Assembly (NCBI GenBank): GCA_038496445.1
Contig: JALMLS010000228.1
Span: 186,001 to 250,000, forward strand
DNA from: Trichosphaerium sp. ATCC 40318
Lineage: Eukaryota; Protista; Tubulinea
Reading direction: 5' to 3'
Length of the DNA stretch: 64,000 nt
The notes beneath the pieces are model-generated. The model worked only from the letters and a program-made list of their open reading frames with translations. It was not told the origin of the DNA and did not search any database. Numbering within the stretch: the stretch's first letter is position 1; every line of letters begins with the position of its first letter. Positions 3,442-63,663 of the stretch are shown piece after piece. Both the position numbers and the translations under genes were made by a program.

Positions 3442-4052
3442 TTATTTTTTTTCTTCTTTTTTCAAAAAATACTTAATTAACGTCATTTCAACAAAAGATT
3501 TTACTCCTGGATCATCTCCCATATTATAAGAAACGAGTACGTTCTTCTTTATACGTTTACCTAGTAATAATATATCATGAGAAGCCGTAAAAAGAGAGAA
3601 AAAAAAGCAAAATTTTATCTCATTTTGACACATTGCATACCGACACGTCTTGACAGTTGCTCTCCTAAACCACCTCTTTTACCCATAAGTGTTGATGTAT
3701 CAGCTGTAGAAGATAAAGCACCAAGCGTAAGAGCTATGTTTCCAAAAGAACCTTCTTCCGTTCCAACCCACACAAAATACGATGCATCAAGGGAATAGAC
3801 CATAAAAAAAACGTTCTAACTGGTTTTAAGCAACATACAGTCTTTGCGTACTAAATGTTTACCTGCTGTTCAAACGACGCTCTAGGGTACTAATAAGCAG
3901 CGAATTTAACCGTTTAGGCGTACTTCCAATGTTCAACAGTGTTTTTGCTTGGTAACAATTCTACTGGAGTCGTAGATGCGTTTTTGGCTTCTGGTTTATC
4001 TACAAAACGATTACGCAACGTATAACTGTAATAAATCGTAACTTGGTTCCAT
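3442..4052 (-). CDS. PSMG4: Proteasome assembly chaperone 4-like (multi-exon)
   Basis: Spliced: ...WKASFEQQNVFFMVYSLDASYFVWVG...FGNIALTL...STLMG...LSRRVGKRIKKNVLVSYNM...VEMTLIKYF, matching the PAC4 pattern. Confidence 0.8.
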
Positions 4053-11417: not shown

Positions 11418-12092
11418 CGAAGGAAGAAAAGAAAAGAACACGAGATTTTTTTTTGATGTTTTTTTTTTTGAAAAATTTGTTTTGAATGGACACTTCTCTT
11501 CTCCTCTCTTCTTTGCAAAAGTACATTGCGTGGAGTATAATATTGGCTATTATTGCATATTTGTATACAACAACATGAATGTCAAAAATAATGAAGCAGA
11601 GATTTAAAAAAAAGAAACTTGTGATTTGATAATCGAGGCTGACAAAAGGGAGAAAAAAAGATAATATGGGGATAATTTTTTTTTAATTTTTAAAGGTTGC
11701 TTACTCTCTACATGCCTCTCACCTTTTGGTTGGATGTAATTATGATCATATATATACATATATAAACTATTAATCAGGGCAGGGCTGCGTTTCTAGTAAA
11801 TATTGGTCTACAAGAACACTTCCAAAAAAAAAAAAAGACTTCGTAAAAAAAAAAAAGAAAAAAAAAGAGTTGTTGTCGTTTTTTAACCATCTAGGATAGG
11901 TTGAAACCCAAAAAGTCCACCACATATAGATGAAAACTAGAGGTACATAATACTGATATTAGCTTAGGGTTATGTGGGGTTTTTTTATTGATACTTCATT
12001 AAACGTGATTTTTTTTTCATTCTTTTATTTTTTTCTTTGTACAATTTAGGTGTGTCAATAAAGAATCAACACTGCTCATTTTGTTCCTTGTT

Positions 12093-23857: not shown

Positions 23858-26634
23858 ATGCAAGTGGAACCGTTTTCCTTCGAACAGAGAACCAATGCGG
23901 TAATGTACGCTAAACGATTATTTCTATTTGGTTTCTCAAATTTCTAACGCTCATTTCTGTATAGTTCTTGTCCGCTATGTGGCGCAAAAGTACGTAAAAC
24001 AAATTTACACTTCAACAGTAGTTAACATTGACACAGACGAACCCAAATGCGTTAAATATGTGCGTACAATGTATACGTACGCAAGTAGACATCACTGAGG
24101 GCATACCAAAACAGTGTACACTTCAATGGTGTAAGGGTTGCGGAAGGTAACTGAAAGCAGCAAAAAAACGCCGTGGGTAACCTTGAATGTAGGTACCTTG
24201 TCCCTCCTGATCGTTGGGCCTTTGCCAACTTAGAATCCCCACAATTGCTTCATGTATGCTTAAAACGGTACGTAATGGCATAGGAAACGTCAAAAGAGGC
24301 ATCAGATACCTTATTAACCGACTTTAAAACAAACCCGCTAATTTTGCCGCAATTCCACTTAAAAACGCGCAATAACTTACTTTGGAGTAGTCTAAGAGGA
24401 CTTAATAAAGTCACAATGAAGGATGCTAGTTTCATTTGGACTGAGCCTCACTCTAAACGTATCAAAGTAAAATTGCGAGTCAGAAAAGAGGTACATTTTT
24501 GTTTCTGTTTCCTTTCGTAGTAGGCCCTTTTATGTCTTTGTTTTCGAATTTTAGTTCCGAAAGTCCATTTACAGTACGTCTTGTGCAACTATTTAATGCT
24601 TAATTAAGGTCTTTGGTGCTGCTGTATTGGAACAAACATTCGTTGTTGAATATGTTGTCGCAAACTTTTTCTGCCCAGATTGTCATCGTGCTGAAGCTAA
24701 AGAACAATGGAAAGCAGTTTGTCAAGTGAGACAAAAGGTGCGTTAACATTTTTTTTTACGCATTTAATACAACCGAAAACTGAAAACATTCGCGTGCGCT
24801 TTGCACAAGAATAAGAAAAAAAAACCAAGAAAAATAATTGAACCAAAAACCAACCGTTCGCTAACTAAGCTACCTACAATAGGTCAGTCATAAACGTACA
24901 TTCTTATGGCTCGAACAAGTAATCTTAAAACACAGAGCTCATGCAAATGCATCGAATATCAAGACAGAGAAGGACGGAGTAGACTTTTACTTTCCACTTC
25001 AACAACATCAACTAAAATTCCTCGACTTTCTCCAAGCAGTTTCACCTATCCGATGGAAACACGCGAAACAGCTCGTATCTCATGATGCAAAGAGTAACAT
25101 AGCTAATTTCAAATTCGCTTGTTCTATCGAAATTGTTCCTATCTGTAGGGCACGTGAAAATCACGTGTGAGAATTTTTTTTCTTCTAACTTTTTTTTTCA
25201 GGAAGATTTGGTTGTATTACCAAAACGTTTGGCTCACTCTTTGGGTCATATCTTCCCATTGAGTCTTTGTTGGAAGGTTTCAAATATTATTCATTTTATT
25301 GATCCTTTTACATTACAAGCAGCTGAGTTGACGTCAGACGCATACTGGGCTACTCCTTTTGCTTCAATTGCAAATAGAGGAGGTTTAACACCTTTTGTTG
25401 TTCTTGATATTGAACCTCTTGGTGTTGTTAATGGAAAGGTAAAGTAGATATTTCGTTTATGAAAAACAACGCTAAATCTCACGCTTCAGTTTCTTTGTCT
25501 AATACCTTTTTTTAGTTCATTTTGGCTGAGGCTACTGTTGCTCGTAGTAAGGATCTTGGTGTTAATGATACTGTGTTTATAACAAGAACACATTTGGGAA
25601 GGTCATTAAAGGCAGGAGATAATTGTTTAGCGTATGTTTGAAGCAAACAAATCAAATTAACTGTTCTCACTTTGTCCTATAGATATGATTTAACTACACT
25701 TAATCTTGGCATAGACACACTCATGCCTAACACAGAGGTTCCTGAAATTGTACGTCCATACTTGCCATAAAATTTGAGACGTTCTCAGTTTTTTTTGTTT
25801 CTTTCTTTGCTTCCTGATTGTTTACTGGTTCCCTCATAGATTTTGGTCAAGAAATACTATCCTATTCGCCGACGTAAAATCAAACGCCGTCATTGGGACA
25901 TCAAAACACTCGTTAAGGATGAAGCAGAGAATATGACAAAAGCTGACATGAACAAAGAAGAGTACGTTTTGGATTTTATTGCAAAAGGAGGATTTTCGAC
26001 CAAACCACTTTCAAAAATCTCTCCTTCTCTAATGGATACGGCCATACAACCATGAAAACTCCGTGTCTCTTTCCGAACCGCGAAGATAAGCATGGTATGG
26101 CCCTGCCAGTACTTGGGTCCGTGAGGACCAGGGAACGTAGGGTGCTGTATTCATTTTGCTTTTTTTTTGTTTTGCCTTTCCACTTGCTGTGTTTGTCTTA
26201 TTTATAATTTGAATAGAGCGGACAGAGAACGCCTAATGCGAGATATTGAGGAAGATCCAGATTTCAGAGAACAATTTGATTTAATTAAAGGTACGTGGCA
26301 TGACGCCTTTGTTTTATCAATTCCTGTTTTTTTCTTCGTTTTCTCCTTATTAGACTTTGCGTTACTGACCCATTTATTAGTTGCTGGTGCTGAAGAAATA
26401 TTTAAAAATAATCAAAAAATCATCAATGATCCAAACTCTATGCTAGACGAAGAAGTAGAGACAGACTTCCCAGAAATTCGTATGTGTTTTTTTTTGCAAT
26501 TTTTGAATGACTTGTTGGTCCCTTATGTTCTTTTAGAAATGGACGAACTCGCTGATGATTTGCAAAAAATGACAATCAATAAACCTGTATTGGATCACTT
26601 ATCTGATAACGAGGATATGGATATGGATGAATAA
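23858..26634 (+). CDS. NMD3: 60S ribosomal export adaptor NMD3 (many short exons)
   Basis: DASFIWTEPHSKRIKVKL, CPDCHR, QVRQKVSHKRTFLWLEQVILKH, DGVDFYF, RTHLG, YDL, DIEEDPDFR. Confidence 0.95.
26034..26152 (+). rRNA. 5S rRNA: 5S rRNA gene nested in NMD3 intron 25962-26216
   Basis: 119 nt GGATACGGCCATAC...CCGAAC..GAAGATAAGC...AGTACTTGGG...GGGAAC...GTGCTGTATTC; 5' and 3' ends pair (GGATACGGC/GCTGTATTC); T-runs follow. Confidence 0.95.
26154..26168 (+). terminator. Pol III oligo-dT terminator of 5S gene
   Basis: TTTTGCTTTTTTTTT immediately after the 5S 3' end. Confidence 0.8.
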
Positions 26635-61001: not shown

Positions 61002-61217
61002 GATGCAAGTTAAACAATAGTTGGTCAAATCTTACATCTTTGTAAATTCTAGACAAAACTTTTTTGCAATTTAGTTTCACGTTGCAAAGTTGCATCAAGG
61101 ACACTTGAACTAAGCAATTTAAAACATAAATATCCTATTATTCATAGCACATTTATCATTATGACACTATGCTGGGTTGAATGCTGTGTTTATGTACAAT
61201 TTTTTTTTTTTTGGTCC

Positions 61218-63291
61218 TTATGACTCTGCCTCAACTTTAGGTACAGCAGCTTCAGTGTCTTCCTTATCCTGTTGTTCTACTTCTTGTCGTATATCTTTCA
61301 ATAAAGCCTTGAGGTTCGCTCTAGTCTCTTTACCCATTCCAACCCTCATCAATCTTCCTTTCATTTGATTTGTAAGCCTTGGGAAAAAAAATAAGTTTTA
61401 AGTGAGAACAAACAAGTGACATTCAAACAACGTGCATTTTGGGATTGAATAATCTCATTATGCAAAGAGGGTGAGAAAAATACTTACTTGTTATCAAGCA
61501 TTCTATACATGTGAAGGCCCACGTTTTTCTTATGTGCATTTGTTTCATCAGCAAGGTCCAAGTATTCATCTATTAGTTGCCATGTATCTATCTTCTTTCC
61601 AGAGAAAAAAGCTGGGTTATGTAATAATGCATCTTTTGAAAGGTCAGTATCACACAAAACAAAAATAACAACAGCGCAAAGTGCTGTGGGGTAAAGAATA
61701 AGGTGCATCTTTGTTTCAAAGAAATTTAACAATACGATGGAATACTCACCTGCACTCATGATACCATCTACACCTGTTTCAGCTATACAACGCTCAATAT
61801 CACCAAATTCTTGTATGCCGCCATTTGCAATAACAGGAATTGTAAGTGCTTCCCTGATACAAACATTAAAAAACTGACATTCCAAAAAAAAAATGTTACT
61901 TTATGCGCTTTATTATTTTCCAATTAGCTGCACCAGTGTTCGCCCTAGATACAAGAAGTTACGAAAAGAATTTTCAGAGGGAGTAAGCAAATAGAGTACC
62001 TGACATTTTCTTTAGTACGGCCATGTACAGCCAAAAGCTACATGATTAAAGTCAGTGCAAATAGTACAATGTAAGAAATTTTTTTTTATACCTGAGCACC
62101 AGCCTCTTCAATGCCCTTTGCAAGTGCTATTGTATCATCATCATTTTTTAGAATACGTATTTTAGCAAAAACTGGTATTTTTAATCCATCTGCAAGTGTT
62201 TTAACTACAGTAACAATAAGCGAACCGAGTTTTAACAAAGAAGTAATTGCGAAAGTTCTCCATTGATTTTTAGCAAAATCACAAAACGAAGAGGCCATAG
62301 ACCAACTCGCTTGTATTCCAGAAATTGGGATATAGCTAATTAGCATACACCCACGAGACTTGGATTGTAGTTTTCAAATAGCAACGAGTGTTGATCCGGG
62401 TGGACGTCACTTCATTCACTTACTACCCCAAGCGCAAAGACATGAGTATTGTATTGAATTGTAGTATTTAAACAAGTGCATATTAACAAATAAAAAATTA
62501 TGGTACATAGAACATAGCAAAGCGAAAGACAATCAAGCAAATTCATTGAAACTGAACTGTTATTTTTTTCATAAATTTCGCAGATTTACTTGACTTGTAA
62601 AAAACACGTGCCTATATGAAAAACCTTTTCGGGTGTCTCTAGTAAGAAAGCACCATATCCACCTTTTCTTGCACATCGTTGTGGACAACCAAGGTTTATA
62701 TCTATAGCGTCACATTGATCTTCAATTATTCTCGCTGCATCCAGTAGTATTGACGCGTCTGTTCCATTAAATTGAGCTACGAGTGGTCTGTTTATCGAAA
62801 AATAGTGTAAGCCATGGAGCTAATTGCGTGTTAATAATTTTTGGGACCTGTCATCCGGAGAAGGGTCAAAATGCTTTTGTCTATATGTAGGATCCTTTCT
62901 GAAGTTAAAACTATGCGTTGGATAAGTTTCGGTGGAGAAATTGATGCAAAGTCTTTTTGAATGCGTACGCATGCATCATTGGCGTATATGTGAGCTCTGC
63001 ACCATATCTAAAAGCGTATTATATTTATTTACAGAAAGAATTGTGTTTTTCTTGTATAATTCTTCGAGCGTATAGTATGCGCGTCGTACCTCCTTGTAAG
63101 CAAACGGAATGCCAATTCGGACCCATCTACCTATAAAAAGCTGTAAAATCGCTAATATACGTCTGATTATTACCATAGGTGCCACCATTAGGCGAGGAGC
63201 TCCTAATTTTTCAAATGTAGCGTAAGCTGTTGTTTCTACAAGTACATTAGCGAAATGTACCAACAGGCACTCTTGTACTTTTTTGCTCCAT
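61218..63291 (-). CDS. DUS1: tRNA-dihydrouridine synthase 1-like
   Basis: VAPMVDGSELAFR, DRPLVAQF, IDINLGCPQ, YGAFL, PVFAKIR, AVHGRT, IPVIANGGI. Confidence 0.93.
62287..62441 (-). ncRNA. U4: U4 spliceosomal snRNA nested in DUS1 intron 62205-62611
   Basis: 5' GUCUUUGCGCUUGGGG (U6 stem II arm), UUGCUAUUUGAAAACU (stem I arm), Sm site AAUUUCUGG, flanking stem-loops, ~155 nt. Confidence 0.9.
62498..62505 (-). promoter_or_regulatory. DUSE/PSE-like snRNA upstream element
   Basis: TACCATAA about 57-64 nt upstream of U4, one mismatch from the Dictyostelium DUSE consensus WCCCAYAA and at the expected distance. Confidence 0.5.
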
Positions 63292-63663
63292 TGTTATAGA
63301 CTTGTAGGCGTGAGTTATCTTTCTCAACATTAAATTAAGTCATTGCACGAAAATACGTTTGTTGAATACATGTTGGACAAATTATTCTTTTGCATAATTA
63401 ATTCACTTGAGCATTCCAATAGTTGAAGATGTATGACTGGTTTATGGTTCCCTGTCGACATTACTAAAGGCTCAGCAACAAGTGATCAGTAAATCACTTT
63501 CTACCACATGGTACATGTTTTATTTTGACACGTGCTATACAAGTTGTACCAAATACTTAGTCATGGCAGGGATTGTCAGGAATGGTAGAACCTGATGACT
63601 ACAAACGTTTTTGGGTTCAGTTATGACTTTACTGTACTAATATCGTGGGTAACTTCTGTTCGG

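Follow-up and report, generated by a model that had tools for sequence, protein, structure and literature searches.

We consider it probable, at roughly three chances in four, that the DNA analysed here carries a functional U4 snRNA gene which is nested, in the same orientation, within an intron of a Dus1-like tRNA-dihydrouridine synthase gene and which possesses an external promoter of its own. The window, that is, the whole stretch under analysis, comprises 64,000 nucleotides from Trichosphaerium sp. ATCC 40318; the positions of the features are collected in Table 1.

Table 1. Window positions of the U4 gene, its candidate control elements and the host gene, in order of transcription
Feature	Position	Strand	Basis
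Host gene, Dus-family (Dus1-like) tRNA-dihydrouridine synthase, 12 exons, 338-aa ORF	61200..63330	-	spliced contigs, Pfam, PDB
Upstream host exon, ends ...ETPEKVFHI + G (phase 1)	62612..62787	-	contigs; Pfam Dus 54.3 bits
407-nt GC-AG intron with the U4 unit	62205..62611	-	X1 contig joint
DUSE-like box TACCATAA, -64..-57 from U4 +1	62498..62505	-	sequence; putative element
TATA-like box TTTAAATA, -31..-24 from U4 +1	62465..62472	-	sequence; putative element
U4 snRNA, Rfam limits, 140 nt	62302..62441	-	RF00015, full model
U4 nt 1-17, U6-pairing arm of stem II	62425..62441	-	duplex with generic U6 segment
U4 5' stem-loop with K-turn (AGUGA ... GA)	62387..62420	-	Rfam alignment
U4 stem I arm GUUGCUAUUUG	62375..62385	-	fits family consensus UUGCUAGUUG
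Sm site AAUUUCUGG, U4 nt 116-124	62318..62326	-	Rfam alignment + sequence
Probable real 3'-terminal U4 hairpin, 7+4 bp, nt 130-158	62284..62312	-	folding
Alternative 5' splice site UUG/GUCUAU, upper stem of the 3' hairpin	62301..62303	-	X2 contig 3 joint
Two T4 runs just 3' of the hairpin	62286-62283 and 62278-62275	-	sequence
Downstream host exon (TT + KTLADGLKIPV...), joined to 62612 or 62303	62092..62204	-	contigs

The U4 gene was identified by a cmscan search of the whole window, in which RF00015 matched from 62441 to 62302 on the minus strand, from which the host gene is read as well, with 62.3 bits, above the gathering score of 46, at E 1.8e-11. The match spans model positions 1-138 of 138 without truncation, and a search in E-value mode had the same outcome. 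The E-value is decisive for U4 identity against chance. An earlier note on this DNA, made from the sequence alone, had recognized a U4 gene with its hallmarks on the host strand and had named an Infernal search with RF00015 as the check; the full-length minus-strand match bears out that identification. When the window was scanned more permissively with Rfam, the further matches consisted of two sub-threshold snoRNA-like ones only.

The Rfam alignment places each of the expected modules. The 5' arm of U4, which pairs with U6 to form stem II, is GUCUUUGCGCUUGGGG and appears in the alignment as UCUUUGCGC..GGGG; its duplex with the U6 segment CCCCUGCGCAAGGAU, a near-universal generic sequence rather than this organism's own U6, whose gene does not lie in the window, has an energy of -26.3 kcal/mol, which was equalled by one of 500 shuffles. 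The internal loop of the K-turn (AGUGA/GA) falls in loop columns with paired stems on both sides. In U4 5' stem-loops the K-turn is the binding site of Snu13/15.5K. Stem I together with the central region reads UUGCUAUUUGAAAACUA. The stem I arm carries one change from the family consensus and, paired by hand with human-type U6 (again not that of this organism), forms 7 of 8 pairs. This organism's U6 would be expected to carry a U-to-A change opposite U4 nt 64. A central stem-loop is present as well. The Sm site reads UUUCU, as against the usual UUUUU. Taken together, the K-turn, the Sm site and both U6-pairing arms are all intact.

With every functional module intact and the whole model matched, it is very improbable that this copy is an inactive or minor paralogue, a decaying duplicate of working U4 genes located elsewhere. 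Promoter-like boxes stand upstream of it, and U4 nt 72-139 are present in an RNA-derived contig (contig 3 of run X2, described below). The suspicion is not without grounds, in that snRNA families are often multi-copy with fast turnover (PMC3342880) and the Sm site and stem I each show one deviation from consensus; further copies of U4 may exist.

At its 3' end the gene appears to extend beyond the Rfam limits. The model stops at 62302 in a poor 3-bp stem, and the sequence beyond forms a far better hairpin between 62312 and 62284 [-9.9 kcal/mol, z -2.67, equalled by 1 of 200 shuffles]. Because this better hairpin extends past the end of the model, we infer from the folding that mature U4 would be ~158 nt long and would end after the 3' hairpin, at ~62284. 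An Sm site followed by a 3' stem-loop, the arrangement that marks the U4 family, is thus present.

The structure of the host gene is derived from RNA evidence, namely two small public runs (X1 and X2) from one sample of one study, which were compared with the window over 61100-63400. They supplied three assembled contigs in total, the library type being not on record; since the contigs are spliced we regard them as RNA-derived. The X1 contig (1044 nt) skips eleven stretches of the genomic sequence, and its joined blocks constitute one open frame of 338 aa (MEQKK...VEAES*). Two of the exon translations score 54.3 and 35.0 bits with Pfam PF01207 [Dus; gathering score 20.4], and the host protein is matched by Dus chains of solved structures in the PDB. 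We take the protein to be probably of the Dus1 subtype on the strength of similarity to human DUS1L and the absence from the 338-aa ORF of the extra domains of Dus2 and Dus3.

The intron that holds U4 is defined by the X1 joint 62204->62612, which skips 407 nt. On the plus strand the skipped stretch has the ends CT..GC, equivalent to GC..AG on the gene strand, with the donor TAG/GCACGT at 62611 and the acceptor CTGTAG/ at 62205. The joint has 3 nt of microhomology (CTA), and GC-AG is the only sensible register since the others (GG..TA, AG..GT or TA..TG) lack splice-like ends. The U4 gene lies wholly between the used donor and the used acceptor, and in the X1 contig it is completely removed from the host mRNA. 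The earlier note had predicted the donor G/GCACGTG together with its phase, and had proposed a search for RNA-seq reads across the junction 62611/62205; the X1 RNA-derived contig contains just this joint (62612/62204), with the reading frame ETPEKVFHI/VKTLADGLKIPV.

Its description of the donor as weak is, on the other hand, questionable. The neighbouring donors are GTACGA, GTACGC, GTACAA and GTACTC, and GCACGT departs from the GTACG type only at +2; judged by its sequence, TAG/GCACGT is a consensus-like GC donor apart from the C at +2, and "weak" overstates the case. The donors of GC-AG introns are usually consensus-like in other respects. The remaining ten introns of the host gene are GT-AG introns of 43-117 nt. 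At 407 nt the U4-bearing intron is a length outlier, four to nine times as long as its neighbours, because it holds the U4 unit (~225 nt). An alternative GT donor within it, AA/GTAAAT at 62588, was combined by hand with the known acceptor and rejected, being out of frame and absent from the contigs.

We also considered a helix bridging the intron ends. The duplex energy of the flanks was no better than that of shuffled sequences (98 of 500 shuffles, or 37 of 500 when the exon was included), and the idea was dropped. There are two inverted repeats, one between 62601-62611 at the 5' end of the intron and 62192-62202 at the start of the next exon, and one between 62573-62582 and 62248-62257; if they paired, the U4 unit would be looped out. 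No convincing target-site duplications or repeat hallmarks of insertion were found around the U4 unit.

An upstream element had been claimed about 60 nt before U4, and the octamer TACCATAA does occur there, at -64..-57. It resembles the DUSE of Dictyostelium promoters in being a C-rich box of 8 nt which ends in A[CT]AA and lies ~60 nt upstream (PMC3188802, PMC7919456). Every spliceosomal RNA gene of D. purpureum has a DUSE ~60-63 nt before it (PMC3188802, PMC7919456). Expression is dependent upon the element (PMC7919456). The box in the window is putative and comes from an organism which is not a dictyostelid; it differs from the published [AT]CCCA[AT]AA in having two Cs rather than three and is therefore not an exact match, while its position fits. 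Versions with two Cs are reported for Polysphondylium pallidum, Acytostelium subglobosum and D. lacteum (PMC7919456). The degenerate octamer WMCCAYAA is not enriched, with 17 matches in the window against 21.7 expected, and since it occurs at chance frequency it carries no weight by itself. This octamer at -68..-53 and a TATA-like box at -36..-21 occur together at 1.9e-4 (0.019%) of window positions, a figure to be read with the knowledge that the motif definitions were fixed after the site had been seen.

The layout suggests that U4 would be transcribed from its own external promoter, composed of the DUSE-like box at about -60 and the TATA-like box at about -30, much as in the snRNA genes of Dictyostelium and of plants. 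The polymerase would most likely be RNA polymerase II, with a start at ~62441-62443. Independent transcription of U4 is likely in view of what is generally known of Sm-class snRNAs, of how the boxes are laid out, and of the cell's demand for U4 in amounts far above those of Dus mRNA.

One might instead suppose that U4 has no promoter at all and is cut from the excised host intron in the manner of intronic snoRNAs, the boxes being chance matches. Like the genes for those snoRNAs, this is a sense-oriented gene for a small nuclear RNA in the intron of a housekeeping gene, and the chance frequency of the octamer in the window and the sense orientation of an intronic 5S gene in the same window (see below) are in keeping with such an origin. 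We nevertheless hold it to be improbable. Intronic snoRNAs have neither promoter nor cap and are trimmed from the intron, whereas U4 belongs to a capped, Sm-class family and has promoter-like boxes here. No Sm-class snRNA is known to arise other than as a primary transcript with a hypermethylated cap. Furthermore, the boxes stand at the expected distances and as a pair are rare in the window, albeit by motifs defined post hoc; U4 must greatly exceed the mRNA of a tRNA-modification enzyme; and the 5S gene, which is of the internal-promoter type and has a T-run terminator, provides no precedent for processing.

Granted transcription from a promoter of its own, RNA polymerase III is an unlikely though not negligible candidate. 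In that event the promoter would be of the U6 style (DUSE plus TATA) and the transcript would end at a T4 run after the 3' hairpin. Such runs do follow directly past the hairpin, and there is none within U4 nt 1-139; a T4-free stretch of 139 nt of such composition is not unusual, however, the rough chance being ~0.3-0.4. To our knowledge U4 is a product of RNA polymerase II in all studied eukaryotes except the trypanosomatids, and the spliced chimera described below implies RNA polymerase II, if it was started at the U4 promoter. The Sm site with UUUCU instead of UUUUU would be more in accord with RNA polymerase III, as would the double role of the DUSE, which according to PMC7919456 (citing Hinas 2006) is common to RNA polymerase II and RNA polymerase III genes in Dictyostelium. 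An RNA polymerase II gene remains our preferred reading.

The earlier note had placed U4 inside the intron. This holds for the X1 joint, by which U4 is removed; the note had missed a second joint, in which U4 is additionally spliced to a host exon by way of 62302. This splice is newly found and is the one point worth following up. Contig 3 of run X2 (266 nt) extends from 62370 to 62303 (U4 nt 72-139), jumps to 62204 and then continues through three spliced host exons. The exon thus ends at 62303 and is followed by GT at 62302-62301; the joint 62204->62303 skips 98 nt whose plus-strand ends CT..AC correspond to GT..AG on the gene strand. Because of these GT..AG ends and the use of the host's own acceptor, the joint is a product of splicing and not an artefact of assembly or reverse transcription. 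A perfect GUAAGU is present at U4 nt 19-24; this contig was spliced from another donor, with which the exon stops one base short of the Rfam U4 end.

Two origins of the chimeric RNA have to be weighed. In the first, some U4-containing RNA would not be ended after the hairpin and would be spliced to the host acceptor with a cryptic GT at U4 nt 140 as donor. In the second, the joint 62303/62204 would stem from the host pre-mRNA, with the GC donor skipped and the GT at 62302 used as an alternative 5' splice site; the corresponding Dus mRNA would have an exon 309 nt longer, containing U4 sequence and premature stops, and would probably be unproductive and degraded. The acceptor is the same as that of the host in either case, as alternative donor use would have it, and the 309 nt that separate the two donors leave the Dus frame unshifted yet contain three in-frame stops, which is typical of unproductive isoforms. 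GC donors are, moreover, generally used less efficiently than GT donors.

We consider this second origin a serious possibility, and yet lean towards read-through from the U4 promoter, because the contig stops near the start of U4 (71 nt short of it), much as coverage falls away close to the 5' end of a transcript, and because the host 5' exons are not covered by any X2 contig, although the 3' exons were assembled; this would fit RNA begun at the U4 start. Had the GC donor been skipped, one might have looked for a contig ending in the unique intron sequence upstream and not inside U4. Both points are weak ones, for contig ends say little about either origin: breaks have other causes, and 3' bias is common. 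Whichever its origin, the chimeric RNA cannot yield normal U4, since the donor falls within the 3' hairpin, in its upper stem. The U4-Dus chimera is probably a dead-end by-product.

The position of the donor invites comparison with fission-yeast TER1 (PMC4299874), likewise an RNA with an Sm site, a 5' splice site close behind it and a spliced by-product. In TER1-type 3' end formation the mature end coincides with the 5' splice site beside the Sm site, and the second splicing step is disfavoured. In U4 the donor follows the Sm site at a distance of 15 nt and falls within the predicted terminal hairpin, and complete splicing is seen. A 3' end formed by first-step cleavage, as in TER1, is unsupported for U4, the donor being placed within a significant hairpin and the product being fully spliced. 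A related and more far-reaching idea is that U4 biogenesis is coupled to the spliceosome, with no efficient terminator of the gene's own and the 3' trailer spliced off between a donor built into the 3' region of U4 and the acceptor of the host. We regard this as very doubtful. If it were true, TER1-like first-step cleavage or a competition between hairpin and donor would set the amount of mature U4, and the spliceosome would by feedback control the supply of an RNA that is part of itself. More generally, the U4-to-host-exon joint shows that host and guest are incompletely separated from one another in their transcription and splicing, and if the joint were regulated, the supply of U4 would be tied to splicing activity.

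The only other Rfam match above the curated threshold in the cmscan of the window is a 5S rRNA gene at 26034-26153 on the plus strand. It is located within a 255-nt gap (25962-26216) which starts with GTACGT, ends with AG, and separates an in-frame exon from the C-terminal exon (...MRDIEEDPDFREQFDLIK) of an NMD3 gene. Two exons before the gap, at 25516-25629, is the exon of this gene that matches NMD3_OB with 49.5 bits. The 5S gene shares the strand of the NMD3 gene and is followed by a long T run. From the sequence it is plausible that 5S is nested in an NMD3 intron.

From the 5S and U4 cases the earlier note had proposed that the genome uses the introns of housekeeping genes to hold core ncRNA genes. 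With two cases in one window, such a genome-wide strategy is unsupported as stated, nor is the idea needed. Two nested RNA genes in sense orientation within 64 kb are noteworthy all the same. Roughly half of the span of the Dus gene, however, is intronic. By a rough estimate in which exons are closed to insertion, about half of the permissible sites may be intronic and half of those in the sense orientation; two sense intronic genes are then not improbable under neutral placement, the chance being ~0.25-0.3 per gene. By the same rough estimate one window in every ten to fifteen or so would hold two such cases. At present, neutral placement in a genome rich in introns accounts for the nesting.

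Small RNA genes within introns have been described before, in worms, flies and humans. In C. elegans 47 of the 120 snRNA genes (39%) are nested in introns (PMC3342880), and there, as in the window, a whole snRNA gene resides in an intron of a protein gene, an upstream promoter of its own is expected, and the host splices the gene out. The present case differs in coming from another supergroup, in having a GC-AG host intron and in the splice that connects the snRNA with the following exon of the host; the putative promoter is of a DUSE/TATA-like type in place of the nematode PSE/UM motifs. The human RNU4ATAC gene is situated in intron 2 of CLASP1 in the antisense orientation (PMC12703291). It, too, is an intronic gene for a U4-type RNA whose host is a protein gene of the housekeeping type, but it specifies U4atac of the minor spliceosome, as opposed to the major U4 gene in sense orientation described here.

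What the window adds is a well-documented non-animal case of a core spliceosomal RNA gene in sense orientation within an intron of a protein gene, the intron being an RNA-proven GC-AG intron. It also offers a candidate for a DUSE-like promoter outside the Dictyostelia. For annotation the case is of practical use, since an intron of this kind is easily mis-modelled and the U4 gene within it easily missed.

Relatives of the locus were sought by several routes, none of which led to a comparable locus. The 58-aa exon adjoining the intron, when used for a word search, recovered only three Dus fragments, with 59-66% identity. Their contigs (L001-L004) use TAG/TAA as sense codons, are ciliate-like and intronless at the site, and contain no U4; for these reasons they are uninformative on conservation of the arrangement. 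A scan of metagenomes with a 20-nt U4 word gave six chance matches, none of them with U4, and exact look-ups of two ORFs of the window (86 aa and 133 aa) found no record. The neighbouring 462-aa ORF matched F-box/LRR clusters with giant-virus labels, and these only.

The 5S rRNA gene of the window lies on the same strand (+) as a protein gene which we named NMD3 because its exon at 25516–25629, two exons upstream of the gap that holds the 5S gene, matches NMD3_OB (49.5 bits). This gap of 255 nt (25962–26216, +) has GTACGT...AG ends and is bordered in the window sequence by NMD3 exons in frame on both sides; on this reading of the sequence, it is a putative NMD3 intron. A long T run is present 3' of the 5S gene.

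Within the U4 snRNA gene, nt 19–24 (62418–62423, −) read GUAAGU, a perfect consensus 5' splice site. The donor used in the single chimeric contig, which joins part of U4 to the downstream Dus exon, is not this one but the weak GUCUAU at U4 nt 140. Pairing of both inverted repeats at the ends of the long intron would leave the U4 unit in a loop; their duplex energies are no better than those of shuffles (98/500 and 37/500).

The transcript contig from public run X1 differs from the window at approximately 11 bases, all in exons and four of them grouped at 61796–61820, whereas the contigs of the second run, X2, are >99% identical. The pattern points to different alleles or strains, or to a close paralogue, in one sample.

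Features of the window and their positions
Feature	Position	Strand	Remarks
SNORD82, C/D snoRNA-like	11919–11977	+	27.6 bits, sub-threshold
5S rRNA gene	26034–26153	+	93.7 bits
DUSE-like 8-mer TACCATAA	32259	+	TATA-like box 22–26 nt downstream
F-box/LRR ORF, 462 aa	34717–36105	+	nearest atlas clusters labelled giant-virus (Nucleocytoviricota)
DUSE-like 8-mer AACCATAA	48453	+	TATA-like box 22–26 nt downstream
Short inverted repeat 1	62192–62202 / 62601–62611		pairs two ends of long intron
Short inverted repeat 2	62248–62257 / 62573–62582		pairs two ends of long intron
ceN108, C/D snoRNA-like	62913–62972	+	25.5 bits, sub-threshold

Downstream of the two other DUSE-like 8-mers no match to any Rfam family was found, and the sequence past 48453 does not look like an RNA gene. 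The ceN108-like match lies opposite a Dus intron of 58 nt, in antisense orientation; the two snoRNA-like matches are probably due to chance.

The nearest relative of the Dus exon is found at 3850–4830 of L001, a Logan contig (DRR438462), where the Dus frame is devoid of introns and reads through TAG and TAA. The contig seems to come from a ciliate whose genetic code is reassigned and which is not related to the organism of the window. The viral labels on the clusters nearest to the F-box/LRR ORF are typical for amoeba-associated gene families.
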